Assembly: GCA_900088475.1 (NCBI GenBank) | Contig: FLMG01003917.1 | Span: forward strand, 1-64,000 | Source of the DNA: Hyphochytrium catenoides | Taxonomy: Eukaryota > Protista > Hyphochytriomycota | DNA length: 64,000 nucleotides | Direction of reading: 5' to 3' | Part shown: positions 4,335 through 57,178 of the stretch, in pieces | Position numbering within the stretch: position 1 is the first letter of the stretch | How the letters are laid out: every line of letters starts with the position of its first letter | The notes under the pieces: model-generated | What the model saw: the letters and a program-made list of their open reading frames with translations, nothing else | Told to the model about the DNA's origin: nothing | Databases searched by the model: none | Program-made: the position numbers and the translations under genes

Positions 4335-7300
4335 ATGAAGACAGAGACGAAGGTAAGAAGGATGAAAAACTATCGGACGGTTTGTGGCTCTAGCCTGGGC
4401 GAGGAAGTAAGGGGTGGTGTGGTCTTTTGCCCTAGCAACAAGTGGAGAAGAAAGCTAAAGAGAACCTATCTCTAGGTCATCCGGCGTACACCGTAGAAAA
4501 GATCTAATATCTCTTTCTATTCGTCTGCGGTTCCAGGTGTTAGTGAAGGTGGAGGGGGCACCAGGGGCCATAAAGAACCTCAAAAGAGATCGCCAAAGCC
4601 TTATGCTGGGCGACAGTCTAGCCATGCGGATGACCGACGAGAACAGAAACGGTATGTCTATCCTCAATCGCTGCTTGTTCTCTAACTTGCCGCCAGTATC
4701 ATCCATCTCTGCTTCTGTTTTGCTCAAGTCTCCGTTGCTTCGTCTTTCTGCCGCGCGCCACAACTTTCTCGCCTCTCTCTCACTTCCTGTCTCAGTGCTT
4801 TCTTAATTGGTCTGTCACCTTTATTTGCATCTCCTCCCTTATCTCTCCGTATGTGTGCATGTTTGTCAATATCTAAGTGTAAGCCTTCTTCCGCAGGCAA
4901 TGTCAGCAGAGCAGAAACCGGCACGGCTCTGGCCCTTAAGGAGGAGAAGCTTTTCTCTATAGCTGGAAGAAAGAGCGGCACGCCTGGCTTTCTTCAAGAC
5001 AAAATCCGGGAATCGAATCGGCGTATCGAGAGATATACACAGCTAAAAGATTGGCACATGAAGATCTTTCTTACCAAGCATGCAGCTCTGATATGTAGCT
5101 TTTGGGAGGAGCAGAAGCAAGCGACAGAGACGACTCAATGGCAAAAGATTAAGGCTCTAGGCACAGGGAGTCTCTTCATTAAGGGTGAGCTAGAGACAAT
5201 GCCTCGGTACGATATGAGCGGGAGCCAGCCAGACTTCATCGATGGCACTATGAGAGACTATCAGATTGACGGGCTGCAGTGGCTGTTGGATCTTGATGCA
5301 TCGCATGCCGCCGGGTAAGCGTCGCACCTTCGGCCGTTTGTACACCGGCTCCTTTCTATGTCGAGGTTCATTAGCGTTATGCCTCTTCTGTTAAGACCTT
5401 TTTGGTCTTCCGACGGGGCTGTAGAACGCCTCATATTATGCCTCCCTCTTTCCTACTATAGATTCTTTCCCACCCCTACATATTGTACATTCATCCTCGG
5501 AGCTTCTCGATTTAACTTCGTTGGCTTCCGTAGAATTCTGGGAGACGATATGGGCCTGGGAAAGACGCTTCAAACCTGCGCCTTTCTTGGTGTTATTGGG
5601 CAGAAAAGTCGCAACCGCGGACCGCATCTTGTCCTTTGTCCTCTTTCCGTTCTCGACACCTGGCGCCAAGAGTTAGCACGATGGGCGCCACATCTCAGGG
5701 TAAAGATATTCTACGCAAATGAGACGGAGAGAAACCGCTTGAAGACCGAGTTGGTGCCGGAAGAGTTTGATGTGTGCGTCTCTACCTATGAGATAGCACT
5801 GGCAGAGCAACGTTACCTGACCCATGCTTGGCGTTGGGACTGGGTGGTGTTGGATGAAGGCTCAAAGATCAAGGGCGCAGATACACAGGTATCTAGGGTG
5901 GTCCGAGGCTTGAGATCTTACGGTCGGCTCATCCTGACCGGTACTCCTATACAAAATAACATGGAGGAGCTTTGGCCTCTCATGCACTTTCTCTTTCCTC
6001 TTGCCTTCCCGGAAGAGAAGACCCGACAACGCTTTGCGGAAGCATATCGCTGGGAAGAGAGTGTGGAAGATGGGAAGCTGGTCAATGCCTGTTCTCAAAA
6101 TACAGCTGTCGTTATGGCAGCCCAATCTTTGCTGAAGCAAGTAATGCTGCGCAGGACGAAGCAAACAGTAGATCTACGCATCCCCGAGAAGATAGAGAAG
6201 CGCATTTTTCTACCTCTCACGCCGTTCCAATCTAACCTTTACCGGCAAATGTTGAACAAAGACGCAGGGCTCCTCAGTGTAGTAGGGAAGGGCTTCGGAG
6301 GTCAAGCTGCGGAATTTACGAAGCTCCACAACCTTTGTATCCAGTTAAGAAAGGTGACAGGCCATCCCTTCAGCCTCAAAGGGGTAGAACCTGCCGACTG
6401 TGACCTGGATATGTTGATTGAAGCTTCATCCAAGCTTGTCTTTCTCGAAAAACTCCTTCCTGAGATATTGCGAAGGAAGGAGAAAGTAGTCATTTTCAGC
6501 TGTTTCACCATGATGTTAGACTGTGTAGAGGACTACCTGACAGGTAGGGGCTTTCTCTTCTACCGCTTAGACGGCTCTACCCCTTCGGCTATGCGAACTT
6601 TTGCCATGAAGAACTTCTCCAAGCCTGACAGCATCAGTCGAGCCATTTTCCTCGTCAGCACAAGGGCAGGTGGCATGGGGCTGAACCTCCAGGCGGCCAA
6701 TCATGTGGTCTTTCTCGACTCCGACTGGAACCCAGCGATTGACTTGCAGGCACAGATGAGGGTTCATCGAATAGGACAGACCCGACCTGTTAACATGTAC
6801 AGATTGGTGTGCAAATCAACAGTGGAAGAGCGGATCTTGGCAGTGATGAAAGAGAAGCAGAAGCTTAGTGACCTGGTGATGGACGAAACTCTGGATACTG
6901 TCCAGGAGACAGAGCAGGCGGGAGAGATATCCTCTGGAGAGCTGGCTAAAGCTGTACTGTTTGGGGCAAAGAAGCAGCTTGGCATGGAGATCAGACAAGT
7001 GAAGGCTGATTTTGAACAGTTCAAAGCCGCCACTTTGGAAGAAATCGTGTCAGCTAAAGACAGTGACGTCGTAGAGAATGATGCAGAAGAAGAGCTCAAC
7101 ATCGACTTTCGCTTCTTTGAAGGGAAAGCGTCCAAACGTTGTGCATTTCAGGATGTAGCAGCAGAATGGGCGGAGGAACTCAAAAACGAGACCAGACAGT
7201 CTCGTGCTAAGAAGTCCACAACTGAACTCATGAACTTAGGTGACGGGCTGGGCATGATGGCTGTCAGCAGGTTTTCAATCGAGCAAGAGAAGCACAATGC

Positions 7301-8585
7301 GGCCTTGGAGAACCTCGCCGCCGAGAGGAGGAAAGAGAAAGAGAGAAACAAGCTGGCAGCAGTGCAGCACCGAGACTACTGCGCACTCTGCTTCGAGTCC
7401 GGACCACGAAATGAAGTTGTAGATTTCAGAGAATTTGAAAGCCGCTTCTCGTCCATGCTGAAAGGTGTGAGCGCTCCTAAACGACTGAAGAAGAGTCACA
7501 CTCGGGAGCTGCAGAAGTGTCAGAACTGCCCGGTCGCCTTCCATCTGACCTGCTTAATGCGTCACGGTCTACCCGGTGGCGCCCGCTGCTTCTCCCACAA
7601 TTGTGCAACCTGCCACAGAGGGGCGTCAGCAGTTGCTGGGATGATGTTCCGCTGCGTGGTATGCCATCACTCCTACTGCCAGGACCACTTGGACTATGAG
7701 AGGACCTATCCCGCTGACGAGAAAGAGGTCTTGGTCCCTCTTATTCAAGATCTCTACCTGAGGAAAGCAAGGATAGCGCAGAATGTTCAGTTTATCCACT
7801 GTGGGTGTGAGCACTGCGAGGTGAGTATCACGAATGAGCGGAAATGAGGCCTCGGCGTCAGGAAGCTGAGAAGACTATAGGTTAGCAGTCGGAGATGAGA
7901 GAAGACACATATCGTGGCGTGTTGGATTGAAGGTCGGGCTAGAGGGCCGATAGGAGGATGGGTGACAGAAGACGAGTAAGAAGAAGAGTATCGGAGAAAG
8001 ACGAGGGCATGATCATATTGCTTCCTTCTTCCATGCTATGCGGGAAGGCTGTTTAAGCTGACCCATCTGACATCTGCTTGCAGGTCTGTGGCAGTGGCGA
8101 TTCACTTCGCTCTAACCTCTTGGTCTTCTGCGACGGGTGCAACAAGGCTTTCCATCAACGCTGCGCCTCCATCCCGAGCCAGCAGCTGAATGTAGACTGG
8201 TAAGAGCGGCATTACTCTAGTTCTTGAAGAGATCGAGCACAAAGCCCACTACAAGCTCTTCTGGTCCATATATTTTTTTCCCTCTTCGTCATCGTCACTC
8301 TATCCTAGTAGATGCTTTTCAGTCGTTGCTATATTTCAGTCATTTATCTTCTGGGATCCTTCCTGCTAACTTCTTTGTCTATTTCTTGCCAGGTTTTGCA
8401 GCAGCTGTAGGCCCAGAGAACCATCCCCAGCTCCTTCCCCTTCGGGTCCAAATGGCCCAGGTTTTCCTTGTACGTCTACCACTCCGTCTATATCCTCATC
8501 GGAGCCAACGTTGCCCACCTCTTCCTCTACTCTCCAAGTCTCTCCGTCGTCTTCCGCGGATGTGATCCACATCATAGATATGTAA
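4335..8585 (+). CDS. SNF2-family (ISWI/HELLS-like) chromatin-remodelling ATPase with C-terminal PHD fingers; multi-exon, 5' end uncertain
   Basis: Motifs: MRDYQIDGLQWL, G|ILGDDMGLGKT (motif I across an intron), DEGS (II), LTGTPIQNN (III), LVSTRAGGMGLNL, DSDWNPAIDLQAQMRVHRIGQ (VI). A Cys/His-rich region follows. Splicing 7820|8084 and about 8200|8392 gives a PHD finger CE|VCGSGDS...FCDGCNKAFHQRC...W|FCSSC. Stop TAA at 8583-8585. Confidence 0.9.
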
Positions 8586-27105: not shown

Positions 27106-30100
27106 ATGGAGCAAGACGAGGCGCCACCGCCATTGTTTGCCTACCTGCATTCTTCTCCGATTGTGAATGTTCTACCTTCTAATGAGACGGTGAGGCTGGC
27201 AGTCTTGGTAGCTCCGACGTTGCTCTTTTTCTTCTCCGTCTTTACTCGGTTAGTCTCTCTAATCTACATTACCTGCTCAGGCCTGAGTCGCTTACACTCC
27301 TTGCTGGCTCTCTTTCTGTCGCTTGCCCTCGTAGATTTGATTGTCTTCATTCCTCTCTATCATTAGCGCTTGCCTTCTTGACTGTCTCTCTTCAGGTCCC
27401 TGTCGATTTATTGGATGTGAATAGGGAGAAGAGTTTCATTTTTGAGTGCGTGCGGAATAGCAGGAAGAGGATAAGATGGGAGGCAAACGTGGCTACTATC
27501 CGGACTTTTTCAGGGGTTATGGCCAAAGGTAGCATGTCCATGAAAGCTTTCATGATAACAGCGGTCTCAATTTTCCTTTCTTCTTTTATGGGTGGCCTCC
27601 CCTTACAATCTGTTCACTCGCCCTCACGGTATCCGTTAAGTTTCCTCTTAGGTATAGACCCGCACCGTTGCTCCCGTCGTTGCCGATATGCCTTTAGGTC
27701 ACTCTTGCACTCTTCACCAGTGCTGCCATTCTCATCCTCAGCTTCTTAGGTTGTCGCATCCTACATTTCTCTGGCCATGGATTGCCGGGGTTTATCACCT
27801 TTGAAACCTCCGATGGTGCAGCGCACTTGTTGACCGAGGATCAACTCAAGAAGAATATTATGCCCCACAATGACGATGGCGAACGACCGGAAACGAAGCT
27901 AGTCTTTATTAGCGCTTGGTCAGACTTCATCCGCAGATGTGCTGCTTCTTATCTCTTCTCGGTCGCACTGACTGCATTGACCACATGCTTCTTGATTCTT
28001 TGAATCGGTCGCCCTCAAGGCGAGCTACGTTTAACTTAGTTCCTCTCTGTCTTGTTTAGCCCAGTGAACTCTCCGGCGCACTTGGGGCCAGCCACCTTGT
28101 CCATTTGTTTGCTTGTCCTCCACTTTACTTCTTATGTTTCATTCTATGCATGAAGGTATTCTCACCATTTCGACCTCTTCTACCCGTTTTCTCTTGAAAT
28201 CGTCTCTCACTTGTGACCAGCCACTCCGAGAGTATTGCCAACGCCTTCGTGGCCGCCGGAGTCCCTCATGTGGTTGCCATCACTTTAGACGCCAAAGTCC
28301 TAGACCAGGCAACCATTGAGTTCTCTCTCAACTTCTACCAGCACCTTCTGGTGAGCCTTATGTCAGTTTTGGTTGCAGTCGTTCCTCTTTGCTGTTGTCC
28401 CATACCCTTGCCGCTAGTCAAGGCACTATAAAATGCCTGCCATGGTCTGCTTAGCGTGACTGCAACCTCATATTCGCATTACTAACGCCTTCCATGGCCG
28501 ATGGCTGTATGATCAGAGTGGCAAGACAGTCCGGCAATCGTTTGACATGAGCAGAGTAAGACGCATATTTGGGATTTGAGCACACTCCTTTGTCCTGCTA
28601 ATATTTTTTGTCACTTATCTTGGACGTCCCTATCTTCCGTCCTTCTACGTTCCTCTTTCACGCACCGGAAACTTATATCAAAAATGTCACCTACTCTAGC
28701 GCCTGCTGGAAGTAAGTGAGGATAGGCAGCGTCGCACGGAAAACATCAAGTTTAAACTCTTGCCGGAAGAGGCAGATCATAATATAGGTAAAGTCTCTTC
28801 AACTACCTAGACGGCTACAGCCCTTTATTCACTTTCCTAGCTCGCTGGTTAGCCAGCTTGTTTTATTTATTCCTTTCCACGGCGTTACGGACTTAGTCTC
28901 TTAGCATCACTTCGCCCTGTAGTTGAACTCATTACCATGTCTCAGCGCCCTCTCAGTAAAACTTTTGTCTAACCCAACTTCGCGATAGGGATCTTGAAAG
29001 ATCTGCGAGAAGGGACCGTGCTTGATATATCAGAGTAGGCCTCCTAATCCTTCCTTTAGTATATGATCTGTGGAGTCTCTATTCTGCTGTTTTCCTGGCT
29101 TCCGATTGCACCTCTAGCTAGCGGTTAGTGTTCAAACCTCTAATCAGCCCAATCTCATCACCAGGCCGCCGAGTATAAATCTTTGCGATGCATCCCCAGA
29201 CATGAGTTTGTTTATCGGGAGATCTCTGCCAATGTTTCAGCTATTCAGAGCATTTCACCAGCCTCCCCGATTGGTATGCCTGTATAGCTCCATGAGGAGT
29301 GACACTGTAATCTTGAGCCCCCTTCTGCTACTCTTCCTTATTTCGTTCCTCCATGCCAGCTTCAAGTTATGGGACCTTGCTAGTGCTTTTGTCAAACTGC
29401 TTCTTGTCCACCTGCGGGTATGCTCGCTTAGAACGTGTTCCTCTGGATCCTGGAAACAAAGCGTCGTTTTAGCTGGTCGAGCGCTAACTGCTTTCCATCT
29501 CCCTTTAGATCACGATTCTTGGAATGGCAGGGATAGGCAAAAGTCAACTAGCTCTAAGAGCTTGCCATTACGCAGCAGAGAGGCGATGGTTCCATTCGCT
29601 GTATTTCTTAAGAATAGGCGATGTCGAGGTCCGCTTTTTCTCCTGTCAAACATGTTTGGCCTTGACCATGACGTCCAAGCTGCTGTTCCCTGCGCTTACC
29701 TCCATTGTCTTTGGGCGGAAGATATTATTGTCCATTGCAGCTTCCTTTCCTTTCGATGCACAAGCATCACTCCTCGGATACAACTTCCAATCCGTATGTG
29801 TCCTTACTCTATGATCAACTTTTGCTACAGTTATCTACGGAAGGGCTTCTCACGGCATTTGCTAGAGCTCTCAAGCTGCCATACGGGTCGCTTGAGGTGT
29901 TCATGGCCGCGTTGAGGGGAAAATTTGATGGATCGAGCAGGTGATGCGGTTGTTATCGTGCACGACCATTATCCATCAGTGTATTAATTGATTGTATTGT
30001 TCCGTGCTTCGATTATGCCGCATTCTAAACTGCTGCTGAAACCTCTTTACAGGTCTCTGCTACTGATTGATGGATGTACAGAGCGAACAGTGGGTGACTC

Positions 30101-32869
30101 ACTGTTTAGAGACTTCCTCATGAATGTCCACAACCGGAGCACAGCGCTTAAGCTCCTCCTTACAAGCACTCAGAAGGTTTCCTATTATGCTTTTGCTGCC
30201 TAAATAGCCATCTTCTAAGTCTCCGTTATGAAATGTATGGGAACGTCGTTAACATGACTCTCATAGAACTTGTTGTTTTGAATACATATGCAACTTTGCG
30301 AACTGCTTATTCTTGCGTGCATATAGTTGGGCCACATCAAGGATCTCGCTGAGAAGGTTATCAGCATTGATCGCTTTTCGGACTTCGAAGCGGCGATGGT
30401 GTTTTGCAAGAGATCTCCCAGGTAAGTCTTTACTGTCGCTTATCTCGTCTTCGTCTACACAGTACTAAGGCGGTGCGGCCGCGCCTCAACAATCTTTGAA
30501 ATGGTATTGTCTCACTATTAGCGAGCCTTGAATGCAGTTTGTGCTTCACGCGTCCCGACCGGCCTAGCGTTCCAATGTTTCTCACAACTAGCACTATTTC
30601 TGATGTCTCTTGTCTGCTATGCAACTTGGGCACCAGAGCTCTGACCCCAGAAGAGATGTGTGGTGATCCTTGCCCTCCCAGAGGATATCCTGCTAGCTTT
30701 CTTTACCAGAAGTTGGGCGAGCAGGCAGTGCTACAGAAATGCAGTATGACTTCAAACATTCTCAAGCCTATCAATGTGCCACTTTCTCATAAGAGTCTGA
30801 ATAAGCGTGGACCTTCTCCTGTTTGATTCTCTCGGTACGATGTCGTCCTTCCTACCACTTACCACTATTTGAATTGCGCTAGTGGGCCACCCTGAGGTAT
30901 TGGCAAGGGTGGCAAGTGAGCTACTAGGAAAAGACCTGCGTCTCCATCGGAAGGAGCTTGAGGCTATGGCAGACAGGGAGGTCAAGAAAGTCGATAGAAG
31001 GAGAAGAGTCGCCCGTTTGAGTGGGTCCATCTGGTAACGGACCAAGCACGCTTTCTGTCTACTCACTCGCAGCCCTAATCCGTCGGTCCAATCGCCTCCT
31101 GTTACTTTTCACTTACGTTACTAACAGGTCCGGCTATCATGCTTATGTTCTGCAGAGGTTGGAAGGAAATGAGGAAGGTAAGTGCGGGAAAGATACATGG
31201 TCCTTAGCGAGAGAGGAGCATTCGCTGTGTTCTTGTAGAACCGTACATATGATGCCTGAATCACTTTTCACTTCTTTTGTCATAAGGTACTCTTGTATGG
31301 CTCCAAGCTCTTGAGCGCTTTATGCAGTCCGACGCAATGGCTGGCGTCGCAGTAGGGAAGCTTTTGCGAAGTACAAAGCAAGATTCGGTAAGAAAGTTTG
31401 ACAGGTTTGTCAACTTCTACGTGTTAACTGCTCTCTCTTTTGCATCAAGGGCTCTACTTCCCTTCCTCCTAAATTGCAGACTGGGGCCCTTCCTCACAAC
31501 TCACGTAATACTCCCATGTGCAGGGCTCTAACCGGGACGCGGAGACTGAGAATAGTTATGACCATGCTGCAGAAGACCCTTTACCTTCCCCTCCCTCGAT
31601 CTCTTCCTCAACACATCGTGTGGGCTCGGTCTCTTCCTCTTCCCCTACTTCTCTCGCCACGTTGTCTCTCTCTGAGGAGGGGTTGAGCTTCAAATTCCTG
31701 GTCCCCGAGCTTCAAGAGTATTTCTACGATCTTGTGCCCGAAGCATGTCATAGACCTCTCTCTGAAAATGGGCTTTGGTTCATGCGAAATCAGGATAAAA
31801 TATGGGGGCATAATGGGACAAGAGGTGAGAAAGAGACGGCTGCAGTTTCACCTCAAAGGGACTGAGAGTTATTGATGACAGTGTTGACCAAGCCACAAAT
31901 GGCGTAAAAGGCGATGTTCTTGGGCGGGGTAAACAAAAGCTCATGAACAGAGGGTGAAGTGGGATTTCGGGTATCAGTGATGAGTCAATAAGGAAGAGCC
32001 AAAGGACAAATGAATCTGTGAGGAACTGAGGGTTATCTTACCATCTACTTGGCAGGTCGCTCTCTGGTGACACTTGAGGAGTTCTGTCACTTTTGGAAGT
32101 GGTTTGCGGCCTTGATACCATGTCTTGCGGACGCACAAGGTGGCACTTTCTCCTTGTCTTCAACCTTTCCCGTTCAGTTCTGTCTTCGTCTAGCCTATGA
32201 CGTTTGTACTTCTCTCGGGTGCCAGCCGTGTTCTTGCACAATTTCTCGTCACGAAGGACCCCATATTCCTAACCTTATGAGCGTAGGTCTATATCTCCCT
32301 AATGGTGTCAGCTAATACTCTCTGATATCAGGTTTATGGGAATCGTACGTTATTTTGGGCTTTATAGGTGGTCAGAGATGCTCTGAGCTTTTGCAGGACG
32401 CTGGGCAGTTCCTGGTCCGCTTCTCTTTTACGAATAGGGGTGCCCTTGTGTTGTCCTACAGAGACCATCAGAAGAGATTAAGGGTCAGTCAAATAGATAT
32501 TTACTCGCTACTAAGTCTACTGCATCTATTTGACTCACGCACCCCGTCTAACCCAATTCGTGTCTCTGCAGGAGGCGCTTATCCATTACTCACCGAGCTC
32601 TGGGTACAGAGTGCTGGTACGTGCAACATGATCACTGGTGAGGACACTTAACCGGCTCACATTCTCTCTCCCTTTCTCTTCTCTGACAATGCCTCCTGTT
32701 TAATCCCTTCCTGTTCTGAATGGAATTATCTCCTTGCGACAAGGTTGATCAGAGGGAAGAGACCTTTCCAACTTTGGCAAAGCTGCTTCAAAGTTTACCA
32801 GTGTTGACCTCAATACTTCTCTGGAACAAAAACAAATTTGTCCCAAAGGAAAGGGTACTGCATTTATGA
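27106..32869 (+). CDS. CHAT (caspase-like) protease - STAND/NB-ARC-like NTPase - STAT-type linker/SH2 protein, paralog A; about 20 exons
   Basis: CHAT: ILHFSGHG (about 27758-27781) and LVFISAC|HS, with the Cys codon split at 27918|28221. NTPase: FIGR, Walker A GMAGIGKS (29521-29544), Walker B LLLIDG, KLLLTS and a GHP (GxP) motif. SH2: FWKWF...LW...ILGFI...GQFLVRFS...ALVLSY. Stop TGA at 32867-32869. Confidence 0.85.
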
Positions 32870-33094: not shown

Positions 33095-36000
33095 CTATTC
33101 AGGAGCTGGCGGTTCTAAGCCATCTATTGCTTCACTTCCGCTTTGACAAACACTCAGTGCTTCGAACTTACTAATAAACATCGGATCCACATAGCAGTAC
33201 ATCTCCTTTAGAAAGCGGCAGTCTTCCAATAGCGACGCAAGGGAGTCGAAAGATCGGGTAGTACCATCATCAAACTGACATTACGGTGAAAAGGGAGGTG
33301 ATTAGTCATTACACTTCGACAAGACGGAGAGCATAGGCGATGATATAACAAAGCCTACACTTCATCTCGCCATCCACCAATGTCAGCGGACTTAAGAGAA
33401 ATAATGTGAAGATGGAGCATTGATTACCTACCGCAAGATGAAACATTCTGCGTGCGTAATGTACCCGAGAATGTCTAACTCTGCTCAAATCTTGCTCTCC
33501 ACTTCTCCTCTCGTGGTGTCGTCCCCCGCAATAGGAAAGGACGAGGGCCCGCGGGAAGGAGAAAGAGAATCGCAAAAGGAACTGGCCTGGGCAAGTTAAA
33601 ACCTGCTCAGCTGCCGCTTTACTTATAAAGCCAATCAGATAACGAGAGTGCCAAAGGGCAGCTGAGGCAGGTAGTTCGAGCAGAGGAAGTAACGAGGAGA
33701 ACCAGCTCCAGAAGCACTTGAACTGGTCTATCGTTACATATCCTGCAAACATAGTGAGCAATGTTAGACCGCAAGTGTAAGGAGGGAGTAGAGTACCACA
33801 AGCAGTCGGAGAGGGAGGCAAGACCCAAGAGTTACCCAGCAAGTTCTTCTCACCTCCCTGATTCTCAATATCAGTTCGACTCCAAAGGGCCCTCTGACCC
33901 TTGAGAAATAACAGAGCACCATGAGACAGTGTGCGAACTTCATGACAGTGTGACAGCGCAACGCCAGCGTGGGCCACTCGTTCGTCAAAATAATCCTTCA
34001 CTTGCTCTGACAATCTGAACAGTGCAAAAAGAACATGACAGAAGAAGGAAAACAGGTAAATGAGAACAAAGCACGTGCCAAACTAGAAAGGGGGCGTCAG
34101 CTCACACATCATAGTGTACACAGATAGGTTGAAGTCTGCCAATTCCGCCCCACGTTCTCTCCAATCNNNNNNNNNNNNNNNNNNNNNNNNNNNNNNNNNN
34201 NNNNNNNNNNNNNNNNNNNNNNNNNNNNNNNNNNNNNNNNNNNNNAAGCTAATGCTCCTAGCAGCAGTGCATATTGCGCCTGGATGTCCACCTGAACAAA
34301 TTGATGGTTACCTAAACGCCGCCCCAACAACTCGTAGGGATGGCAGTCCCACCCAACGACAGAGGTAGAAAACAAGATCAGTGCCGTTTCTCATATACCT
34401 AATGTTCGCAGCACTGGGTGTGCAGCAAGAAGCTTCAGCGAGTGTCTCGTTGAGCGGATGGTTGCCTTGTCTTCTACAGCCAACAGGTCCGTGTGCTGAA
34501 GTTTCCTAGTCATAGAGTATGTTACCTAATCAGCATCGTTGAGGAGTATCACCGTGCCTTTCCAATTTTCCTCTCCCATATCTTGTCAGTGGGTGGACCC
34601 CCGTCTTCGAATCGACATCTGAGCTCACCTAGGTAATCTCTCCAGAAATAACTGAGTCGAGCTGTTAACCTCCTCTTGATTAGCCCCCGTAAGAGGGAGC
34701 GGCTCCAAACTAATAATGCCAGTGGAGAAGTCTGGCAAGAGGGAAGAGACCTGGAGGAAAGGGAGATGAGTCTCCTTCGATGAGCATAATTCTGACCAAC
34801 ATTAACCACTAGAGGAAACGGATTGATCAACGAATTACCTGTTCAGGTTCTGTCCTTGCGGTTATTACGATCTTGAGGTCCTCCTTTAGCTTCTTCAGTT
34901 CGCTCAGGACCCGTCTAAGACAATTAAGTTGCTGCTCACCAAGAGTTGAGTGAAAGATTGCTGAAGAGACTCCATCAACCAAAAGGATGCATCTGCATAT
35001 GGATAGACGAATAATCATGACAAACGTCAGCATATCTGAGAGTAGGTTGGAGGACAAAGATAGTTGGTAGGGAGTCTGACTGCGAAGCACATAGGTGATC
35101 ATTTCTCCGGTCAGGCAGTGTGGTGCAAAATGGCCAGCCATTCAAGTGTGAAGGCACCATGCACAGGCAAGAGTATGAACATAGTTTGAGATGGTGGGAA
35201 TATTATGCAACCCAAATCTCATAATGCTTTGTAAGAAGCTTCCAATCAGGACTTCAACCAATAGACAAAAACTCGNNNNNNNNNNNNNNNNNNNNNNNNN
35301 NNNNNNNNNNNNNNNNNNNNNNNNNNNNNNNNNNNNNNNNNNNNNNNNNNNNNNNNNNNNNNNNNNNNNNNNNNNNNNNNNNNNNNNNNNNTCGACAAAG
35401 CATCAACCGCCAGGGGATCAAATTGCTATTCGAAGCGTTAATATCCCCTTTTCCGCCGTGGCTTGTCATATAAGAGAAACCTTCTGCTGCTTGAAGACAA
35501 AGATACCGCTACTCTTGGTAGAAAATGTCTCTAGGTGTACTCCACTCCCCTTTTGGTTGTGCGCCCCCTTACCTCCTGGTTCTCCAATCGGACAGTGAAG
35601 AAGCAGTCGAAAGAGGTTCTGTCTTCTAAATGCTTCATAACTTGCAGAGCGAGCTCCGTCTTTCCTATTCCTGCCGATCCTGTGATGATAACCTACAAGT
35701 GAGGAACGTAGTACCGGCCAGCGCTTATTAGGTTCCAGAGTGCGATGGAGAGTGAAACAGACCCTAATGGACCCAGCGGTCCAGGACAACGCTTCAATGT
35801 GACATACCACATGCTTTTGCATGAGGAGCTGAAGTGTCTCTCTGACACAGGCTGATCGACCGACGAAAAAGGGTTGAGGTGTAAGTCCGTTTACTCTTTT
35901 GGGCTTCCTACAGGTAAGGGCAGAGTCAACCTATCTTCAACATTCAAACAACATTCAGAAGCCTATCTTTGCTTAGAATTGCTGTCAGTGTTTTTCTCTT

Positions 36001-41059: not shown

Positions 41060-44000
41060 ATGGGAAAGCAGCAGGGTTACGATATCTCAAAGCAAACCCA
41101 TGGCCCTCCAAATCAGGACAATGGGGTCCCTCAGGAGATTAGCAGGGTTCCTGACGGCGCCCCCGGAGAGGAAGAGGAACTGCTGCACACCGGAGCTCTG
41201 TACCTAAAGCGCAGCCTGTCTTCGACACAGGTTCGAATCCTAAAGACTACGGAAGCGGTACCTAAAGTACTGTGTCTAACGCCAACACTTGCACAGGCTC
41301 TATCCAAGAAGATGCTTGGCATCCTCAACTCCTTTGAAGACAAGCTATCAATCGTAGAGACGAAGATGCTCCCTATCCACAACACTACACAGGAGCTCAA
41401 TGTAGCAAAGAATAATATTGATCTGACTATCTCAGAGATTGGGAGGATACAAGCCAACTTCAGGGTGGCCAATGAAGTTGATAACGTTCTGCGGAGAGGC
41501 GTTGATGCAGACACTGCCGCCTTCGTGGAGGCTGTGGCAAAGATGAAGAGTGCACTGGCATTCTTGAAGAGCAATCCCAAGCTGAAAAGTGCGGAAAAAT
41601 ATACTCGCGCATTAGAGAAGTCTTTGGGACGGGTAAGCCTGCAGGGTATTAGCGAAGAGGGAAGGTTAAGAAGGTGACCTCGAGGTGTAAGTAAGCGGGA
41701 GGAAACCCAAGGAAATGTTATCAGGCGAAGACAGGGAGGGATTTACTATCACTGGAATTTTCGGTAAAGCGACAAGAACGAGCAGGGACTTCAAGAAAAG
41801 AATGACACAAAAGGACGCAGGATTGTGATGCTTGAGCTCATTGCTTGTAAAATTATAGGCAACCAAAGATTGTGAGGCAGAGCTTCTACGACTCGTTTGC
41901 GCAGGAAGCAGCACTACCGCGGACTTCAGAGACATGCTTAATCTTCCGTAAGATTGGCTTCTGTCATGTCTGTTCCCTATTCCTTCATTCACGCGTGACC
42001 TATGAGTAGGAAGCCAGCCACAGTTAAAGCCAGACTGTTATGCAAGTGCCTCTACACAGCGGAAGAGAAGAGCTTCATGCAGGTCTGACCTCCTACTACA
42101 ATGCGCTGAGATCGTGTTCCTTTTTAGTTCCTAGGCACTTTCTATTTCCCAGCCGTAAACACGTTAACCCAAGTCTGCTGCTTTCTTCTTCATCTCGCTT
42201 TTCTTGGCATGCATCCACTTCCCTTCCATTGGCTTCTTCATGTCGTTCTTTTCCTATGTCCGCTCTCTCCCAGCTCATTCTTGGGCCTTCGTTAAATGAC
42301 TTCACTTTGAACGCATTTGTTTATCCCCAGCAATATCTGAAGTATCGAGCTTCGGCTGTAATGCATGCGCTGGACGTTATAATGGCCGACGCTCATGAGG
42401 CTGATAAAGGGTTCAGACATAGGACAAGCTCGCGCTTCCAAAACTTTGTGGAGGCCTTACAGGTTGGTAGAGCTAAGCATCATTGCCAGGATTGCTGATC
42501 CCAGCCAACTGCATATCTGACGCCTTTCCAGCCCCTAAACAATAGCGATTAAGCCGCCAATGCAGGGGTGGGATGACAACGACATTTTTTCTAACACAAA
42601 CTGTCCAACTCCACCTTAGATAGAGTTCAACGTCGCCATGAAGATCCTTGCAGATCTACCTGAAGCCAAAGCTTTATTTCTGGCATCAGTTCATCCGGCC
42701 ATAGAGAGCTTTTCAGGGAGAATACAGGAGGTTCTCTCTAGGGCAGAACTCACGCATGCTGATTTGGGCCAAGCTTGTAAGTCTTCTACGCCCTTTCGGA
42801 AGAGGGTCCAATCTCTGGAGAATCCAAGGATTGCGTAGAACAGTTCTTCTTTTGCTTGTATAACAAGGTATACTCCTATTGCAGCAGCCCAGGCGCCAAA
42901 TAGCCCACAGCCTACTCAATCCGCAAGTGCAGCTACCTCGGTTGGGGTTAAGTCTATTTTCGAGGTTCTAGCCATTGCTGAAAGCCTCGACAACGCGCTG
43001 AATGACTTCGAGGAGGTGCTAAACATTGAAGAGGTGAGGAAGGCAGAGTGACGCCAAGGTGGAATGGCGGTCAAGGGTTTGACTATTGGATAGCTGTGCA
43101 GTGCCTACGCAACGCTCTTCGTGGTTATCTTGGTTGGCCTGAAAGAGTATGTCTCTCTTTATTTTCCAACCAGGATGAGAAGGAGAGTGCTCCTGACTTT
43201 ATTAGTCCTGAAGTGCTATCGGTGAAGGATCGACTCCAGTACCTTCACACCCAGGTACCTCGTGTGTCGAAGTGTTGTGTGTGCTCTTGTAGGCAGTGGT
43301 TGATGAAGAGAAAAGATGGGTTCTAACAGCGAAGAGAGGGAGGGGGTTGACGAAGAGAGAAGAAGAGAGGAAAGGATGGCAAGGGCTCAAATGCAAGTAA
43401 AGGTTGGCATGGCCATGTTAGGACCAGAATGGCCTCGACGCAATAAAGAAAGGTTTTTCCAGTAACAGACTACAAAGCCAGAAACTAAAGAGCCCTCCGT
43501 CCCAGGTCTTGGCATCAGGCAAGCGTCTCCTCCTGCGTTTTAAGGATATCATTCAAAGCGACGCGACAAGCTCAAAGGCCATAGCTAAGGACGGTGGCAT
43601 TGACCGCGTGGCGCTGAAGGTCGATGTTTACCATCGCTCCTATACTCTGTCCTGACTACATCGACTCCTTGGCCCGTAACTCCGCCGTGCGTCTCTTAAG
43701 CTTAGCAGAGTGCTGCATTTATTCTAGAACCTTGCCTCCCCTAGCTTGTCGTTGAACCATGCGTCTCTTGTTCCATTTGAAGGTGGTCAAGTTCTGTCGT
43801 GAGGTCGTGGAATATGAGCAAGTCATAGCTTCGCTTATAATGGAGGGAGCAGATGCAGAAAGCCAGCAAAGCGCTTTCAGACTATACATCGGTAAGAAAA
43901 GGGATCGGACGAGCTGTTGTCTAACCCCTCTCAGCTACGTATCATTGGTTCTGGATGTATGTTCCCGGCTTTTCAATTATATTTTCTCGCCGCCAGCCTC

Positions 44001-47828: not shown

Positions 47829-50253
47829 ATGTCTACTCCTAAGGGCCTCAAGCTCTCCTTCCAGAATGACATGGAAATGTCATTATGGCTAACGAAGAAA
47901 CTCAAGAATGCCTGGACTTCTGAAGATGTCAGCTCCATCATTCAAAGCTCCAGCGTTAGTGACATCGCATCCTGCTTTCCACTTCTAGAGCAGGCGGTCA
48001 AGGTAATTCTCATCTGCAGGAAAGAACAGAGAGGGTAAGCTAAAATATGGGGATATGTAGGCAAGGACGCTGCTGTCATTCATAGCTATGCCTGCCTCGA
48101 GCCGGTCTGCAGTGGCCGGACACCTCCGAAAGCTTCTCGATGTGGCATCGACGGACAAGGATGAGGTACACGCTGCACTACAATTGTGGTTAGTAGTGAC
48201 ATTTCTTAACACGTTTGAGTACAGTGGGTCCGGGTGGCTGCGTGCCTGTGTGAGCGTTGGATAAATGAGGAAGGGCTTCCACGCAGGGGTGATTCCCTCT
48301 CGTCCCATGTCCACGCTTTCGTCCAGAACCTAGAGTCATCAGGTTGGTGCCGAAGTGACCGAAGTGACAAAACATTCCGACTTAGGGGTCAATGGTGAAG
48401 GCGTGGGCGTAACGTAAAGACGGGGAAATATAGCCTTCAAACCTTCAAGGGAGGAAGCTGTTGCACCGAGGAATTGGAAAGATCATTCGGGAGACTCAAA
48501 GGGAGAAAGGCCTGAAGGTGGTCTAATAACCTTCTACCGTTGCATGCCACCCCCTTTGGTCTCAGAGTTGCGGAACGGTGCACCCATTGATGTTGCATCG
48601 TACGTCAGCAGTTACTCTCCTTTAGAGATGGCCTACATGGCTCCACATCTGCAAACTCCTCTTCCAGAGAAGGCAGGGAATCCTCATTTCCGTGTTCGCA
48701 AAGAGAAAGTGAAGCCAAAGAGTGAACCCGGTAGGGTATGATGTTTGGTCTTCGAGTCCGTTGTCTCGGCCGTGCTGTTTCCCCCTGTTGGTTTATCCCT
48801 GGGTTCTGACACGAGGACTTACAGATGCAGGCAAACAAGCCAAAGGTGGGAATGCTCCTGACCGGCCGACCTCCACTCCAAGGTACCCACCTCTTATACG
48901 CTCACTTGTCACGTAATGTCACGTGCTCTCCCCGGTTTCTTTGCCCGCCTCCCTAGCTCTATGTTCACTCTTGCCTAGTAGTTGTTGGTCTGCCTTCTCA
49001 ACTGACTGACGGCATGGAATGCATTGATTTATGTCCAGAAATCTATTGCCTGGAGGCGCCCAAGATAGGACTGGTCATACGCCATTGGCCGTCCTCTCTC
49101 GTCGGCCTTCATCAATGGGCATCACGTCAATGGCGAGCTCGGCTCTTGGTGGGCGGTTTAATAGAAAGACCAGTAAAATCGCGGTCATTGGCATTGATGA
49201 GGTATAAAATGCAGTCTAAACAGGCCTTAAAAGAGACAGTAAATCGGCAGCAACCTGAACTTGGACTGCAAAATGCATATCAATAGGTCAAGGCGCTAGA
49301 GGCAGAGAAGCAGAGGGCAGAAGAGGAAAAGAAGAGACAGGAAGAGGAACGAAAAAGACTACAGGCACAAAAGCGAGAGGCTGAAGCTGCCCAAAAGCGG
49401 GAGGCCGAGGCCGCAGCCCATGAATCCCAAGCCGCAGCGAAACAAAAGACGGCTGCCAAAAAGAAACGGCCTTCGGTACTACATACTAACCGTTGAATTG
49501 TGAGTGTGACTCAAAGCATTGACGTTTCCGGGTGGCTAGGTTGGAGCCAAGGAGACTCCAAGGGCCAAAGAAGGAGTTCAACTTGCAAAGTCAGCTCCAA
49601 CACCATCTTCTGCTGCCGAGAAGCGAGCCTCACCTTTGGAGGAAGGAGAGACAACACCTGGTAAGCATATCCAGGTCCTGGCAGCAAGTCTATGCAGGAT
49701 CTCACTTGCGCCTTCTCATGGCTCCCAAACCCCCTCTTCATATAATATTGTGATCTTGATTCTCTACCATGTATGGTGGACATGAAACCTTACACTACTA
49801 CTTTGGCTCTCTATTCTCCTGCTGGGCGCAGCGTCCCAGATCGAAACACTATTAGAGGGTGCAAACATGCTAAATGAGGAAGGCCGATCAAGAATCACCA
49901 AATTTTTCCAAGGAGATCGGGGTACTAATAGGTTTTGCGTTCCGGTTCTGCTCTAGTCAAGCTCTGTATCCCACCGGTTTCCCGACAACTGTTTTGTGCG
50001 TGTCTATGATGTCCCTGGGTACAGTTCTCATCACTACTTGCCCAAGTGTTCTCATGCACATGTCTTCATCCTAACAGTGAACCCAACGCCAGAGCAAGGT
50101 CCCACTGTTCGGATCCTTCTCAAGGAGGAGAAGATTAGTGAAGCAGACGGATTTNNNNNNNNNNNNNNNNNNNNNNNNNNNNNNNNNNNNNNNNNNNNNN
50201 NNNNGTGGAAGTACGAGAGTGAATCACCCTTCGACCCTCGCGACCTTCTCTGA
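47829..50253 (+). CDS. NELFA: Negative elongation factor A (NELF-A)-like; multi-exon, 3' end uncertain because of an N gap
   Basis: N-terminus SLWLTKKLKNAWTSEDVSSII...IASCFPLLEQAVK|ARTLLS...LLDVASTDKDE|WVRVAA parallels remembered human NELF-A (LWLHNKL..W....IASLL...CF..L...VK....A..D.DPWV). Central PLEMAYM and HFRVRK motifs. C-terminal NPTPEQGPTVRILLKE parallels ENPCQEQGDVIQIKLSE. Confidence 0.78.
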
Positions 50254-52990
50254 GATCGCTGGGGGAAAAAGACGTGAGGGAGCCATAGCCCCGGCTAACA
50301 GAAAGAGATCTGCGTCCGGGAGAGGCACTAAGCTGTCTGTGGGGAACATTAGGGGCCAAAGTCCTGTTCAAGGGAGAGGACGCTGAGATCCGTTGTGACC
50401 TCACTTGGTCTGCTAGTCTCGGGCTGCTTGTCCTTCCCTGGGAAGCCTGAGCATAACCGAGGCGGTTTGCAGCATCTGGCAGAGGAGAGAGGCTTCCTCT
50501 TTCTCCTACGATAGATGGTGCGACGTGGTAAAGCTTGCTAACCTCTAAGGCAAGCTTTCTTATATCAGGATGCCAATGGTCAGAACCAGTGGTGTAGAGC
50601 GCATGCTGCAGCTTGCGGACCACTCCTTGACCTAAAAGTATCAGCTTAGGTTGTAGCTTCTTACACATCTGTATCCCCTTCATCGCTAGCATTGCATGAG
50701 GCGACTGTACACTGCTGATCAATCGGTTCAATAGCTGCTTGACGACGCCTTGACCGTCAGCTGGGCGACATACTGACATCCCAGCTGGACTACGGCCATT
50801 TACCTTTCGGGGTGCACTACTCATAAGACGTTGAAGCATGTCTCCTGATACCTCGAGAATTCCATAGAGGACGTTCAGCAGGCGAATCTCTTTGCTACTA
50901 TCCCCAAGAGGCCAGGACTTGAGTATAGTAGAGATCAAGCGTTCAAAAGATGATGAAGAGCGCCTAGAGATCTCTATTGCTAAACCGGAAGCCATTGACA
51001 ACTCGGTCACTGCCTCCTCGTCCAAAGCCAGGAGAAGCTTCACTATGGGGCAATGTAGTCTCTCTGCAAACTTCCCGTCCTTGTCGATGGATGGAATAAC
51101 TTCCTTGCAAGCTCTAAGCAGAACATCAACCTCTCCGCCCACCCAGGTTGACTTAGCAAGGGCTAGTGTTCGCTTTGGAGTACATTCTACCGCCATGTTA
51201 AGGCCTGATGAGGTTACTAGGCCAATGAGCACAGCCGCATCGGCCCTATCGACAAGAGCCTGAGATATGCACTCGAATATGTATCCTTGCAACCTAGCTG
51301 GCTGATGGCGTAGGAGTAGAGCCTTCATAACCTGGAACATCAATAGCTTCTTAGGGCTCTTTTCTGAGAGCGTTTGAACGCTGGAGACTGCTATTTGCAC
51401 CAGTCTATTTGAGACCAAGTCCTCATCTGCAGTCTGGACAGCTTTTACCACCATCTCTAACAACACCACCGAGTTATGTCCTGGTAAAGAGAGTACAGGC
51501 ATGCTGGACAGCGACGTGCCCGAACCAGTCCGCTGCATTGCACGGGCGTTAAGTTTGTGCACTGCGTAGCTGTGGAGTGGTCGAGACTTCGGTTCTTCAG
51601 TAGATAGAGCAGAAGATGTTCCTCTTTCCGTTGCCGTGTCTCTGTAACCTCCAGACTCGTCGAAAATGTCTCCAACTACTAGCAGAAGCTGCTCCAGGCC
51701 TTGGTTGCAGATATTTGACTCCTCGTCTAAGGACACCGGAAGCCTCATCCATATTGCTTCATGCGCTATAGGAAGAACAGTCTGCCGCAAAGGGGTCATC
51801 ACGTCAGCCGCTATGCGCTGGCTGCCTAATGCCCAAGAAAGGAGACGGTAGGTGTTCGCCTTATCTTGGCACCAAGGTATGGATGTGACGATGATCAAAA
51901 TGCTACGACAAAGCTGCAAAAGCTTTAGAGGTGACGCAGCAATGGCCTCTCCTTCTATGGACCCGTCAAACAAAGCATGACTTAGTTTCTTGTTCTTCAC
52001 TACGCAGGAGTACGCCTTCGCCGATAGGAGAGCAGCAAAGTATGCCACTGACAAGGACACAGATACTGTCCCCAAATCCTCACTGCTACGTCTATGGAAA
52101 AATTGCCGCAGGCCATAAGAACGAACTTGCTGCTTTTGGCCTTCCAGTGCTGCGGATTTCGCCTTGTTAGCCCTGAACGTCCCTTCATAGAAGAACTTGG
52201 ACATGCGAATGCGGCTGTATAGAGTTGCAGGAATCAAGGGCTGGGATGATAGAGAAGAGCTATCTGCCACCTTGAGCACCGCGTTGGATCCATAATTGCC
52301 GGCCCAAGTCCAGTCACCACAATGTTCCTCCGCTGGTGTAAGAAAATCGAGAAGACTTTGAAGCACACGCTCTTTGGACTCCCGATTCAGCCGCCCGAGT
52401 GCTGTCTTTCCCAAGGTTGATACGGCTTTAACACTTTCCGCCTGCAAGATATTCTCGATCAGCTGTTGTCTCTTCTTTTGCATATAGCTCTGTCTAGTCT
52501 ATCTGCAATGCTTTGCACACCTCCTTCCCGAATGTCCTCCTTCCCGAAGGTTACAACTCCCATAATTGTCTTTGCCTCATCTACATACCTGCGATCCCAA
52601 TACCGAGACAACATTTTTACCACCTTTCTCTTCTGCAGAATCGGATAGACGAATACCGCGCGGCAGAGGCTTGACTCTAGCGGTAAGTTCGTAGTCACCG
52701 GGCAGGAGTGGGATGATGACGCCCTCAAACTCGAAGAGTCTGCAAACATTATCATGATAATCGCTGCTAGCAGGGAGGACTGAACTTGGAGCTAAAGGAA
52801 CTGCATGCCACTGGCTGTGCTGCGCGGCGCTTGTGGGTATATTCGTCCATATTTCCGCAACGAGGCTAAGCGACGGCGGGCCACTAACCTCTGCCAGAAG
52901 CTGACAGCGACAGGGCTGCAGAACCTTTACTTTGGTCTCGGTACCAGCAGATGGCGTGACCTGCTTGATCTTAACGTTCGCCGCCACCAT
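50205..52990 (-). CDS. Protein with an N-terminal beta-rich (Ig/CBM-like) module and a C-terminal divergent PP2A B56 (B')-like HEAT domain; 2 or more exons, 3' end in or near an N gap
   Basis: Intron 52588-52490 (GT..AG, phase 0) joins ORF 52577-52990 to the 782-aa ORF. C-terminal KSWPLGDSSKEIRLLNVLYGILE, ISSVQSPHAMLA and LYTTGSDHWHPDIR parallel B56 KFWP...S.KEVMFLNELEEILD, CVSSPHFQVA and L...S..HWN..I. Confidence 0.68.
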
Positions 52991-55681: not shown

Positions 55682-57178
55682 TCATGGTCGCAAAAGATCG
55701 TCGTAGGTCCTCAGAATGCTGGTGCAATGCTCCATTGCCTCCTCTATGTCTTCAACTGCACAGCCGTTTCTTTGATACCAATGCAGGTAAGCCCTGTGGT
55801 CAAGCATAGTCTCTGCCCTCTCTAAGGCGTGGGAGATTACCGGAAGAACCCCAGAGCCATTTGATGCCACAGTTATTACAGGCTCGTCTGTGGAGGCCGA
55901 GGAAGGATGTAACTCGCTTTGCAGGGCTTGAGGATTCCAAGGCACGCTGCGGCAGAATTTCTTGAGATAGCCTTGCAGTTTAAGACTGCTCCCTGTACTT
56001 CTCGAAGCCCTACTAGCACTACTACCATAAGATGGGCTGCTAGATACTCCCATGTTCTGAGGGGTTAGTTCCTTGAGGTGGAGGACCGCCAGAAGGTCAA
56101 TATGCTCTGCATAACGGGCCGTCGCGGTGGTCTTGGTGCGCTCATGGTAGCCGTAAGTGTATGCATAACGCCGCACGAGGTCCTCTATCACTGCTTCCGG
56201 AGATCCACTCCCTGTGCGGTTGGTGGAAGTGGGGGCATTTGAAATGGAAGTAATATCAATCACCTTTGCGCTCGGCATAGGACATACCCGTCGTACCAGT
56301 TCCATGAGGTTGAAGGGGTGACTGTGCCCCGTCAAGCGCCGTCTGGCATCCGATAACATGAAGTCAGCTAGATCTCTGACGATAAGTGCATTCAATGCCG
56401 CCATATTCTCAGAAGTAGTGGGCTCTTTTGCTTGCTTTCCGTGCACCTCTTGAGCTCGGAATAGTAAATGATCATTGTCTTTCATTATGATGCAATCAGC
56501 AACGTCCTGGCAGGCGCTGAGGGCCAGACAGAAGTTATAGTGCTGTACAGGAGTATCGCCATTCCTAAATGGAGCCACTACGACCGTGCTTAAGTAAGCT
56601 TTTGGGTACTCCTGCCGGAGCAATTCGGCAAGTGCTGAGCCGACGCCGGAGCCGGTCCCACCAGCCAAGGACATAAAAAGATTCGTGCCGTCAAATCTGT
56701 CAAGACCCTCTACCTGCAGTCGAAAGGTGTTTTCAAATATAGTTTCTAGCGACGCCTTCTCCGAAAGCTCGTCCCCACACTTCCAACCTTCTGCCTGAGT
56801 CCAGGAAGCTGGGACTGCTGGCCGTTGGACAGCCTTATGATATCCCACCCCCCAGTTGTTTCCGCAGCCAGAGTGCTGGTAGATGCTCCGATGAATATAG
56901 CCGCTGCCATATGCTCGAGTATGACTGGCCAGTTGCGCTCCTCTAGCAATAAGAGGCCGTTTCAGTACTCTTGGCTCTGTATCTACGTACAGTACTGGAC
57001 CAAGCGGCATCCACTCGTCACCAGAAGAGGAGCCTGCATGAGGTCGCACACCACTGTTGCCCTTGTTCAGTATACGACTTCGCGGCCGTTTTTGACGCCG
57101 TTCACTTTCGGAAAGATTCCATAGCTCTTCGGCTATCTGGATGCCGCATTGGCCCACAAACACAGACGCAACCGTCAT
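55682..57178 (-). CDS. Divergent tubulin of the delta/zeta(eta) class, most like zeta-tubulin; intronless
   Basis: VGQCGIQI, VDTEPRV, GCGNNWGVGY, tubulin signature SLAGGTGSGVG, APFRNGDTPVQHYN and AYLHWY. There is no acidic C-terminal tail. Confidence 0.88.
   Translation of the reverse strand: MTVASVFVGQCGIQIAEELWNLSESERRQKRPRSRILNKGNSGVRPHAGSSSGDEWMPLGPVLYVDTEPRVLKRPLIARGAQLASHTRAYGSGYIHRSIYQHSGCGNNWGVGYHKAVQRPAVPASWTQAEGWKCGDELSEKASLETIFENTFRLQVEGLDRFDGTNLFMSLAGGTGSGVGSALAELLRQEYPKAYLSTVVVAPFRNGDTPVQHYNFCLALSACQDVADCIIMKDNDHLLFRAQEVHGKQAKEPTTSENMAALNALIVRDLADFMLSDARRRLTGHSHPFNLMELVRRVCPMPSAKVIDITSISNAPTSTNRTGSGSPEAVIEDLVRRYAYTYGYHERTKTTATARYAEHIDLLAVLHLKELTPQNMGVSSSPSYGSSASRASRSTGSSLKLQGYLKKFCRSVPWNPQALQSELHPSSASTDEPVITVASNGSGVLPVISHALERAETMLDHRAYLHWYQRNGCAVEDIEEAMEHCTSILRTYDDLLRP

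Follow-up and report, generated by a model that had tools for sequence, protein, structure and literature searches.

Proteins of the STAND class, which include the apoptosome, the NLRs and the bacterial Avs proteins, sense their ligands through repeats of the WD40, LRR or TPR type. In Apaf-1, CED-4 and the plant NLRs NRC2, NRC3, NRC4, ZAR1 and Sr35, an effector, an NTPase switch and a C-terminal sensor are combined by the same general logic; in SAVED-CHAT (8tl0), a CHAT protease is switched on by ligand-induced oligomerization, and Csx29/Craspase and DdvA are other regulated CHAT proteases that can be set beside the family described below. To our knowledge, no STAND protein in which an SH2 domain takes the place of the sensor has been described. 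Here we analyze a stretch of 64,000 nucleotides (nt) from Hyphochytrium catenoides (contig FLMG01003917.1, hereafter the window), in which a plus-strand gene at 27106–32869 encodes a predicted protein that combines a CHAT domain, a STAND NTPase and a STAT-type linker-SH2 module. The domain order is effector-switch-sensor, and the catalytic, P-loop and betaB5 Arg residues are kept.

When compared with Apaf-1, CED-4 and the plant NLRs, the family to which this protein belongs shares their NB-ARC-type fold (Foldseek E 4e-8 to 1e-6) at an identity of only 15–20%, and no MHD-type motif was identified in the family. However, the window protein has its protease fused in cis rather than a CARD, CC or TIR adaptor, and an SH2 domain rather than WD40 or LRR repeats. 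With STAT6, STAT3 and Dictyostelium STATa the family has in common the motifs FW.W, GF(I/L)SK and GTFLLRFS and the terminal LYP..PK..AF, but it lacks the N-terminal, coiled-coil and DNA-binding domains of the STATs as well as the phosphorylated Tyr of their tail. SAVED-CHAT, the closest solved CHAT protein by both sequence and fold, differs in that its SAVED sensor binds cyclic oligoadenylate, in that it has no NTPase module, and in that it belongs to prokaryotic CRISPR-linked defence. What is new relative to these systems is a STAND effector-switch-sensor design with an SH2 domain as the predicted sensor; the protein family itself is already in databases, although it appears to be unstudied.

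Gene model and full-length relatives

Three-frame translations and splice-site inspection resolve the locus into 21 exons and 20 introns that give a single open protein of 787 amino acids (aa), starting with the ATG at 27106 and ending with the TGA at 32867–32869 (Table 1). All 20 introns have GT-AG borders, and the reading frame is open across the 21 exons with consistent phases. The exons have a median length of 109 nt and the introns of 166 nt; on the sense strand, pyrimidines make up 60% of the introns, as opposed to 49% of the exons. The pyrimidine-rich introns of ~200 nt, together with the gaps in the assembly, bear a resemblance, and no more than that, to what has been published for Physarum polycephalum (PMC4758236). 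A first-pass annotation had described about 20 in-frame GT-AG exons yielding one polypeptide, a description that the splice model and the end-to-end alignment to homologs bear out, and every motif that it quoted is present at the expected position. The same annotation was right in stating that the protein is hidden from the track of open reading frames (ORFs): the locus illustrates how a three-domain protein can be concealed from ORF-based annotation by many small exons.

The only uncertain junction is that between exons 14 and 15 (31033/31128), where the acceptor directly follows a TACTAAC motif within a poorly conserved stretch. In 31119–31165, this branch-point-like TACTAAC abuts the exon 15 acceptor (31127/31128), and another acceptor, CTGCAG, lies 28 nt downstream; joining the latter to the exon 14 donor (31033/31034) creates an in-frame TGA. 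The transcript may be spliced in more than one way at this site, or the exon 14/15 junction may differ a little from the modelled one.

Whether the exons belong to one gene was tested comparatively, by setting the spliced protein against intron-poor homologs. In local BLAST alignments, the 787-aa protein is colinear with Saprolegnia diclina SDRG_08366 over aa 10–786 (E 1e-87) and with the Lagenidium protein over aa 10–767 (E 4e-93). Of 196 family columns conserved at at least 90%, 127 have the identical residue in the 787-aa protein. For the predicted protein, this agreement in motifs and colinearity is far beyond chance. Furthermore, the homologs P0079, P0037 and P0243 are each encoded at full length by a single uninterrupted ORF on their contigs, and Pfam or precomputed matches cover all three domains (CHAT, NTPase, SH2) in P0079 and P0243, and CHAT with SH2 in P0037. 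A diverged paralog next to the gene shares with it the intron that interrupts the codon of the predicted catalytic Cys, at the same phase. Because the homologs are colinear, because the domains are found in uninterrupted ORFs elsewhere, and because the paralog is colinear and shares the Cys-codon intron, the locus reads as one intact gene, and a merged-gene artefact is very unlikely.

The same CHAT-STAND-linker-SH2 order, colinear at full length, is found in the oomycete protein SDRG_08366, in Lagenidium giganteum N0F65_003632, in a Phytophthora infestans protein named 'SH2 domain', and in CAM9438393.1 of the brown alga Ascophyllum nodosum. The oomycete and Ascophyllum proteins share with the window protein the N-terminal motif, the His/Cys dyad, the P-loop, the GHP motif and the SH2 Arg. 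In contrast to its intron-poor oomycete homologs, the window gene has 20 introns, and its SH2 domain is without the conserved Lys. Among the oomycetes, the family was detected in Saprolegnia, Achlya, Thraustotheca, Aphanomyces, Lagenidium, Pythium, Globisporangium, Phytophthora and Peronospora; it is also present in A. nodosum and in unlabelled eukaryotic metagenome and Logan assemblies. Pfam assigns CHAT, AAA_16/NACHT and SH2 to SDRG_08366. Full-length identity to the named members is 25–29%, rising to as much as 36% in the conserved N-terminal half. Proteins of this architecture are already deposited in public databases, where they bear automatic names (such as "SH2 domain-containing protein" or "CHAT domain-containing protein"). 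The uniqueness that the first-pass annotation had implied is reduced, the whole design recurring in oomycetes, in a brown alga and in environmental eukaryotes.

Maximum-likelihood analysis of the CHAT-STAND part gave a tree that has long branches and an assumed root and samples one sequence from each of seven named oomycete species; in this tree, the window protein falls outside the oomycete clade (support 92/97), and SH2-bearing proteins are split from TPR-bearing proteins (85/92). The predicted 787-aa protein is placed as a deep-branching, divergent member of a conserved, uncharacterized eukaryotic family. Because the seven oomycete sequences, one per species, follow the species grouping, the pattern looks more like that of a conserved endogenous signaling switch than that of a diversifying immune receptor family.

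The CHAT, STAND and linker-SH2 modules

The N-terminal domain contains HFSGHG at aa 78–83 and FISAC at aa 125–129. The predicted catalytic residues, His82 (followed by Gly83) and Cys129, are retained, each in a family column with a conservation of 90% or more. By itself, exon 4 matches Pfam CHAT (PF12770) at E 0.0014 and 18.5 bits, which is under the 24-bit cut-off, while the colinear homologs pass with 38–48 bits (E 1e-9 to 1e-12). A profile of the N-terminal part, computed from 41 family sequences, matches SAVED-CHAT 8tl0 at E 1.6e-16, with the HG and Cys positions aligned. The fold was assessed on the homolog P0021, whose N-terminal domain was modelled separately with a deeper alignment, since full-length AlphaFold2 (AF2) modelling gave a predicted local distance difference test (pLDDT) score below 50 for the CHAT region. 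The resulting model of aa 1–250 has a pLDDT of 82.9, and a Foldseek search with it retrieved 8tl0 as the best match (template modelling score 0.68), followed by caspase-11, CED-3, MALT1, gingipain, metacaspase and Csx29. That the protein begins with a CHAT protease with an intact dyad, as the first-pass annotation had it, thus agrees with the retained residues, the Pfam matches of the homologs and a family fold like that of SAVED-CHAT and the caspases; the prediction of a CHAT protease of the caspase-hemoglobinase fold, with the dyad His82/Cys129, is fully supported.

The second module has, in addition to the Walker motifs and GHP (Table 1), the pre-motif FIGR at aa 246–249 and LLLTS at aa 377–381; Walker A, Walker B and GHP of the 787-aa protein fall in conserved family columns. 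Exon 9 alone gave weak Pfam matches to AAA_16, NB-ARC and NACHT. Above the respective cut-offs are the matches of homologs to AAA_16 (4e-9 to 1.4e-8) and that of P0021 to NACHT (1.9e-6); for NB-ARC, the SH2-bearing homolog P0060 stays under the cut-off (1.6e-4, 21.5 bits, cut-off 23.5), which is passed only by TPR-bearing relatives. An AF2 homolog model was matched by Foldseek to NRC3, NRC2, ZAR1 and Apaf-1 (root mean square deviation, rmsd, ~5 Å over 255–263 columns) as well as to CED-4, in agreement with a nucleotide-binding domain followed by a helical ARC1 (GxP) domain of the kind present in Apaf-1 and the NLRs. The kept motifs, the AAA_16 and NACHT matches of the homologs and the fold resembling NLRs, Apaf-1 and CED-4 are all in line with the STAND NTPase that had been proposed.

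Between the NTPase and the C-terminal module lies a poorly conserved middle region, whose homolog counterpart is modelled by AF2 as disordered (pLDDT <50). Beyond it, the motifs FWKWF (aa 665–669), LW (682–683), ILGFI (688–692), GQFLVRFS (705–712) and ALVLSY (718–723) follow one another. Exon 19 alone scores 27.1 bits against Pfam SH2 (E 4.7e-6, cut-off 21 bits). For the linker, the evidence is at the level of the family, coming from a homolog profile and a homolog model: about 190 profile positions (636–828) align with the linker and SH2 domain of STAT6 at E 4e-16, the profile also matches STAT3, STAT1, STAT2, STAT5 and Dictyostelium STATa, and Foldseek aligned the homolog model with STAT6 (4y5u) and Dictyostelium STAT (1uus) over 177–187 columns (177 for 1uus, rmsd 3.9 Å) and also matched it to 1uur. 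SH2 and STAT_linker clusters are likewise indicated by a protein-atlas comparison. When the SH2 exon of the paralog served as the query of an exhaustive HMMER search, STATs were the best matches; SH2 kinases and SDRG_08366 were also retrieved, but no identical or near-identical protein was. Taken together, the exon 19 score, the family profile and the fold matches to 4y5u and 1uus uphold the earlier reading of a STAT-type linker-SH2.

Although the STAT C-terminal motif LYP..PK..AF is common to the family, the window protein ends at the PK motif and has no STAT tail; nor did Pfam detect STAT_alpha, STAT_bind or STAT_int in the homologs. Because there are no matches to the STAT coiled-coil and DNA-binding domains and because it ends before the tail, the predicted protein has a STAT module but is not a STAT.

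Since TPR repeats occupy the corresponding place in the closest relatives that have no SH2 domain, sequence comparison supports the view that the SH2 domain stands where sensor repeats normally sit. These nearest relatives are CHAT-NB-ARC-TPR proteins with 33–35% identity over aa 8–470, one of them from the metagenome-assembled genome (MAG) of an archaeon (Methanothrix sp., HOO53909.1, annotated as 'tetratricopeptide repeat protein') and the others metagenomic, such as P0103–P0107, or from oomycetes. Such CHAT-NB-ARC/NACHT-TPR proteins have the CHAT and STAND parts in common with the window protein, including the N-terminal start, but they carry TPR in place of the STAT linker-SH2 and lie on the other side of the main split of the tree. 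Their TPR repeats agree with the placement of the SH2 domain in the sensor position by the first-pass annotation. Oomycetes also have SAM-CHAT-NACHT-TPR proteins, so that, within this group, the same predicted effector-switch core is coupled to different predicted sensors. In Aphanomyces euteiches, P0246–P0253 are SAM-CHAT-NACHT-TPR proteins of ~1470 aa whose CHAT-STAND part is related.

Table 1. Coordinates of the gene and of its predicted domains and motifs in the window
Feature	Position	Strand	Basis
Coding region, 21 exons, 787 codons and TGA	27106..32869	+	Splice model; colinear with full-length homologs
Exons 1–7	27106-27189, 27396-27528, 27750-27918, 28221-28350, 28517-28555, 28700-28787, 28989-29034	+	
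Exons 8–14	29165-29273, 29509-29628, 29831-29940, 30053-30176, 30327-30421, 30637-30743, 30883-31033	+	
Exons 15–21	31128-31177, 31287-31387, 31524-31824, 32056-32139, 32332-32483, 32572-32616, 32744-32869	+	
N-terminal motif LFAYLHSSPIV and predicted CHAT (clan CD, caspase-like) domain, aa 1–215, exons 1–7	27106..28990	+	Homolog Pfam, profile, fold
His82 codon (His-Gly of HFSGHG), predicted catalytic	27776..27778	+	Aligned with HG of 8tl0 'LHFIGHG'
Cys129 codon (FISAC), predicted catalytic, split TG/C by intron 3 (27919-28220)	27917..28221	+	Aligned with Cys of 8tl0 'LVVLNAC'
Predicted STAND NTPase module, aa 243–470, exons 8–14	29202..30938	+	Motifs, homolog Pfam, fold
Walker A GMAGIGKS, aa 271–278	29521-29544	+	
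Walker B LLLIDG, aa 345–350	30057-30074	+	
GHP, aa 453–455	30885-30893	+	
Middle region, aa 471–605, helical at first and Ser/Pro-rich afterwards, poorly conserved, holds 31033/31128 junction	30939..31682	+	Sequence; homolog model
STAT-like linker domain, aa ~606–681, includes FWKWF	31683..32139	+	Family profile; Foldseek
SH2 domain, aa 682–787, exons 19–21, and stop	32332..32869	+	Pfam; STAT alignment
Arg710 codon (betaB5 Arg of FLVRFS)	32418-32420	+	

Candidate mechanism and rival explanations

By analogy with Apaf-1, the NLRs, the Avs proteins and SAVED-CHAT, we infer the ligand, the gating, the oligomerization and the biological role of a cytosolic protein made up of these three modules. 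Its SH2 module would bind a phosphorylated, probably phosphotyrosine (pTyr), ligand on a partner protein; binding would free the STAND module from its autoinhibition, and exchange of the nucleotide would make it oligomerize; induced proximity would activate the fused CHAT domains, much as happens in SAVED-CHAT filaments and in apoptosome-caspase systems; and the protease, once active, would cut its downstream targets. A precedent for a CHAT domain activated by oligomerization is 8tl0, which represents an activated SAVED-CHAT filament. We regard the chances of this reading as evenly balanced; pTyr-driven oligomerization and protease activation, as put forward in the first-pass annotation, is plausible purely by analogy, and the immune or cell-death role that this annotation suggested is a candidate function. 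A more specific version, an "SH2-apoptosome" in which Tyr phosphorylation of a partner directly triggers the ATP-dependent assembly and activation of a fused caspase-like protease and which would have arisen when a protein of the CHAT-NB-ARC-TPR type, the nearest of which in this analysis is archaeal, had its TPR repeats replaced with the STAT linker-SH2, is offered more tentatively, as a possibility somewhat short of an even chance.

If the SH2 domain gates assembly, pTyr signaling would be wired straight to a caspase-like executioner outside animals, and, in protists, a single protein would connect pTyr signaling with regulated proteolysis or with cell death. The reading, if true, would also bear on the use of the SH2/STAT module before metazoan JAK-STAT signaling. 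The seven oomycete species sampled for the tree include important pathogens of crops and fish for which genetic tools exist, which opens the hypothesis to direct tests.

Several observations weigh against this mechanism. In the SH2 domain, Gly694 replaces the alphaA Lys of GFISK, which we take to be the residue contacting pTyr in STAT structures, and this Lys is kept in the paralog and in most of the aligned family, with Arg in P0102 and P0037; moreover, the BC-loop Glu is replaced by Phe in both the 787-aa protein and the paralog. Because of these two replacements, pTyr binding by this SH2 domain may be weakened or altered. Conversely, Arg710 is invariant across both copies in the window, the family and the STATs, and Ser712, which follows it, is likewise kept. 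The retention of the pTyr-binding Arg claimed in the first-pass annotation stands, but with the alphaA Lys and the BC-loop Glu replaced, the pocket is only partly canonical. A search across the family for a built-in SH2 ligand found no conserved Tyr in the tail or in the disordered region, and since there is also no STAT-like tail, no such ligand is evident.

Further such points concern the NTPase and the basis of the comparisons. Neither the sensor-1 Arg nor a winged-helix MHD-type His, residues that hold ADP in the off state of STAND proteins, was identified in the 787-aa protein or the family consensus: LLLTS lacks an Arg where one is normally found, the consensus contains no MHD-like motif, and the stretch after GHP is poorly conserved. 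For this reason the STAND assignment, supported by motifs and modelling, extends to the NB-ARC/NACHT kind and is not narrowed to one of the two. The full-length AF2 homolog model has a predicted template modelling score of 0.37 and does not define the domain arrangement. Structures and profiles were obtained for oomycete homologs; the window protein itself was compared through its single exons and by local BLAST and MAFFT, and its splice model was established by comparison with homologs. A literature search, with Liu et al. 2011 (Sci Signal), reportedly a study of SH2 proteins in 21 species, outside its scope, returned no paper that describes or characterizes a combination of CHAT, SH2 and STAND/NB-ARC or any member of the family, in agreement with the earlier statement that no characterized protein with this architecture was known.

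As the SH2 domain is located at the extreme C-terminus, behind a disordered linker of ~130 aa, it would also fit a tethered docking domain. It might serve for targeting or substrate selection, bringing the protease-NTPase to a receptor, scaffold or substrate that is phosphorylated, with the STAND module being controlled otherwise, for instance by its nucleotide state or by the middle region. Most SH2 domains are recruitment modules, and the seven-species oomycete tree, in following the species grouping, suggests a fixed endogenous partner. However, the closest relatives have TPR repeats at this very position, repeats of this type both sense ligand and autoinhibit in Apaf-1, the NLRs and the Avs proteins, and Pfam searches of the exons and homologs revealed no other candidate sensor domain in the protein. 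We consider docking without gating unlikely, although it is the strongest of the alternatives to an SH2-gated protease.

Slightly less probable still is that the linker-SH2 no longer reads pTyr and instead binds phosphoserine/phosphothreonine or an unphosphorylated ligand, or self-associates, so that the STAND protease would be gated without tyrosine-kinase signaling. The ancient SH2 domain of Spt6 binds phosphoserine/phosphothreonine, and both Gly694, at the place of the pTyr-contacting Lys, and the BC-loop Phe shared with the paralog would be compatible with such a change. The repertoire of the oomycetes points in the same direction: classical tyrosine kinases are reported to be scarce or absent in them, and P. 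infestans to have only ~4 SH2 proteins (PMC3019232). Nevertheless, the betaB5 Arg and the next Ser are invariant in the family and the STATs, the Lys and a near-exact STAT motif of the GTFLLRFSE type persist in the paralog and in most members of the family, and the SH2 domains of Dictyostelium STATs do read pTyr, made by tyrosine kinase-like (TKL) kinases (PMC4758236). By analogy with Dictyostelium, the kinases that phosphorylate Tyr in such lineages would probably be of the TKL or dual-specificity type.

Finally, an artefact of the gene model, whereby the exons would stem from two or three adjacent genes (CHAT-NTPase and a separate SH2 gene) or from a pseudogene, could draw on the poor conservation of exons 14–17, the atypical acceptor at 31128 and a splice model resting on comparison rather than transcripts, but it is highly improbable in view of a 21-exon frame that stays open with consistent phases, homologs that elsewhere have the domains in one uninterrupted ORF, a colinear alignment to homologs from aa 10 to the last residues, and the same domain order in the neighboring paralog.

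The neighboring paralog and the rest of the window

The diverged paralog adjoins the gene tail to tail on the minus strand (~38238–33095) and is colinear with it, with the same CHAT-STAND-linker-SH2 order. It keeps LHLSGHG, ISAC, SAGIGKT and FLLRFS and, unlike the gene at 27106–32869, the Lys of GFISK. The end of its linker and its SH2 domain are encoded in one exon (33432–33740), which scores 23.1 bits against Pfam SH2. Runs of N occur within the paralog locus, whose intactness cannot be judged from the sequence.

Rfam and tandem-repeat scans of the 25–39 kb part of the window detected nothing. Elsewhere in the window, a single-exon ORF of 829 aa at 5358–7847 (+) encodes a predicted SNF2-family helicase (SNF2-rel_dom and Helicase_C), for which there is no called gene on the record; its best relatives, from scattered eukaryotes, are only 37% identical. 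The lineage seems to be poorly represented in protein databases. Three further ORFs gave partial domain matches: a long ORF at 41060–41677 (+) with a COG3/Exo70 N-terminal-like segment, a long ORF at 50135–52483 (-) with a PP2A B56-like segment, and an ORF of 498 aa at 55682–57178 (-) with a segment of the tubulin GTPase domain.

A 2-kb profile gives negative GC and AT skews across the plus-strand gene (26–30 kb) and positive ones across the minus-strand paralog (36–40 kb); the skew follows gene orientation because the introns are pyrimidine-rich on the sense strand.

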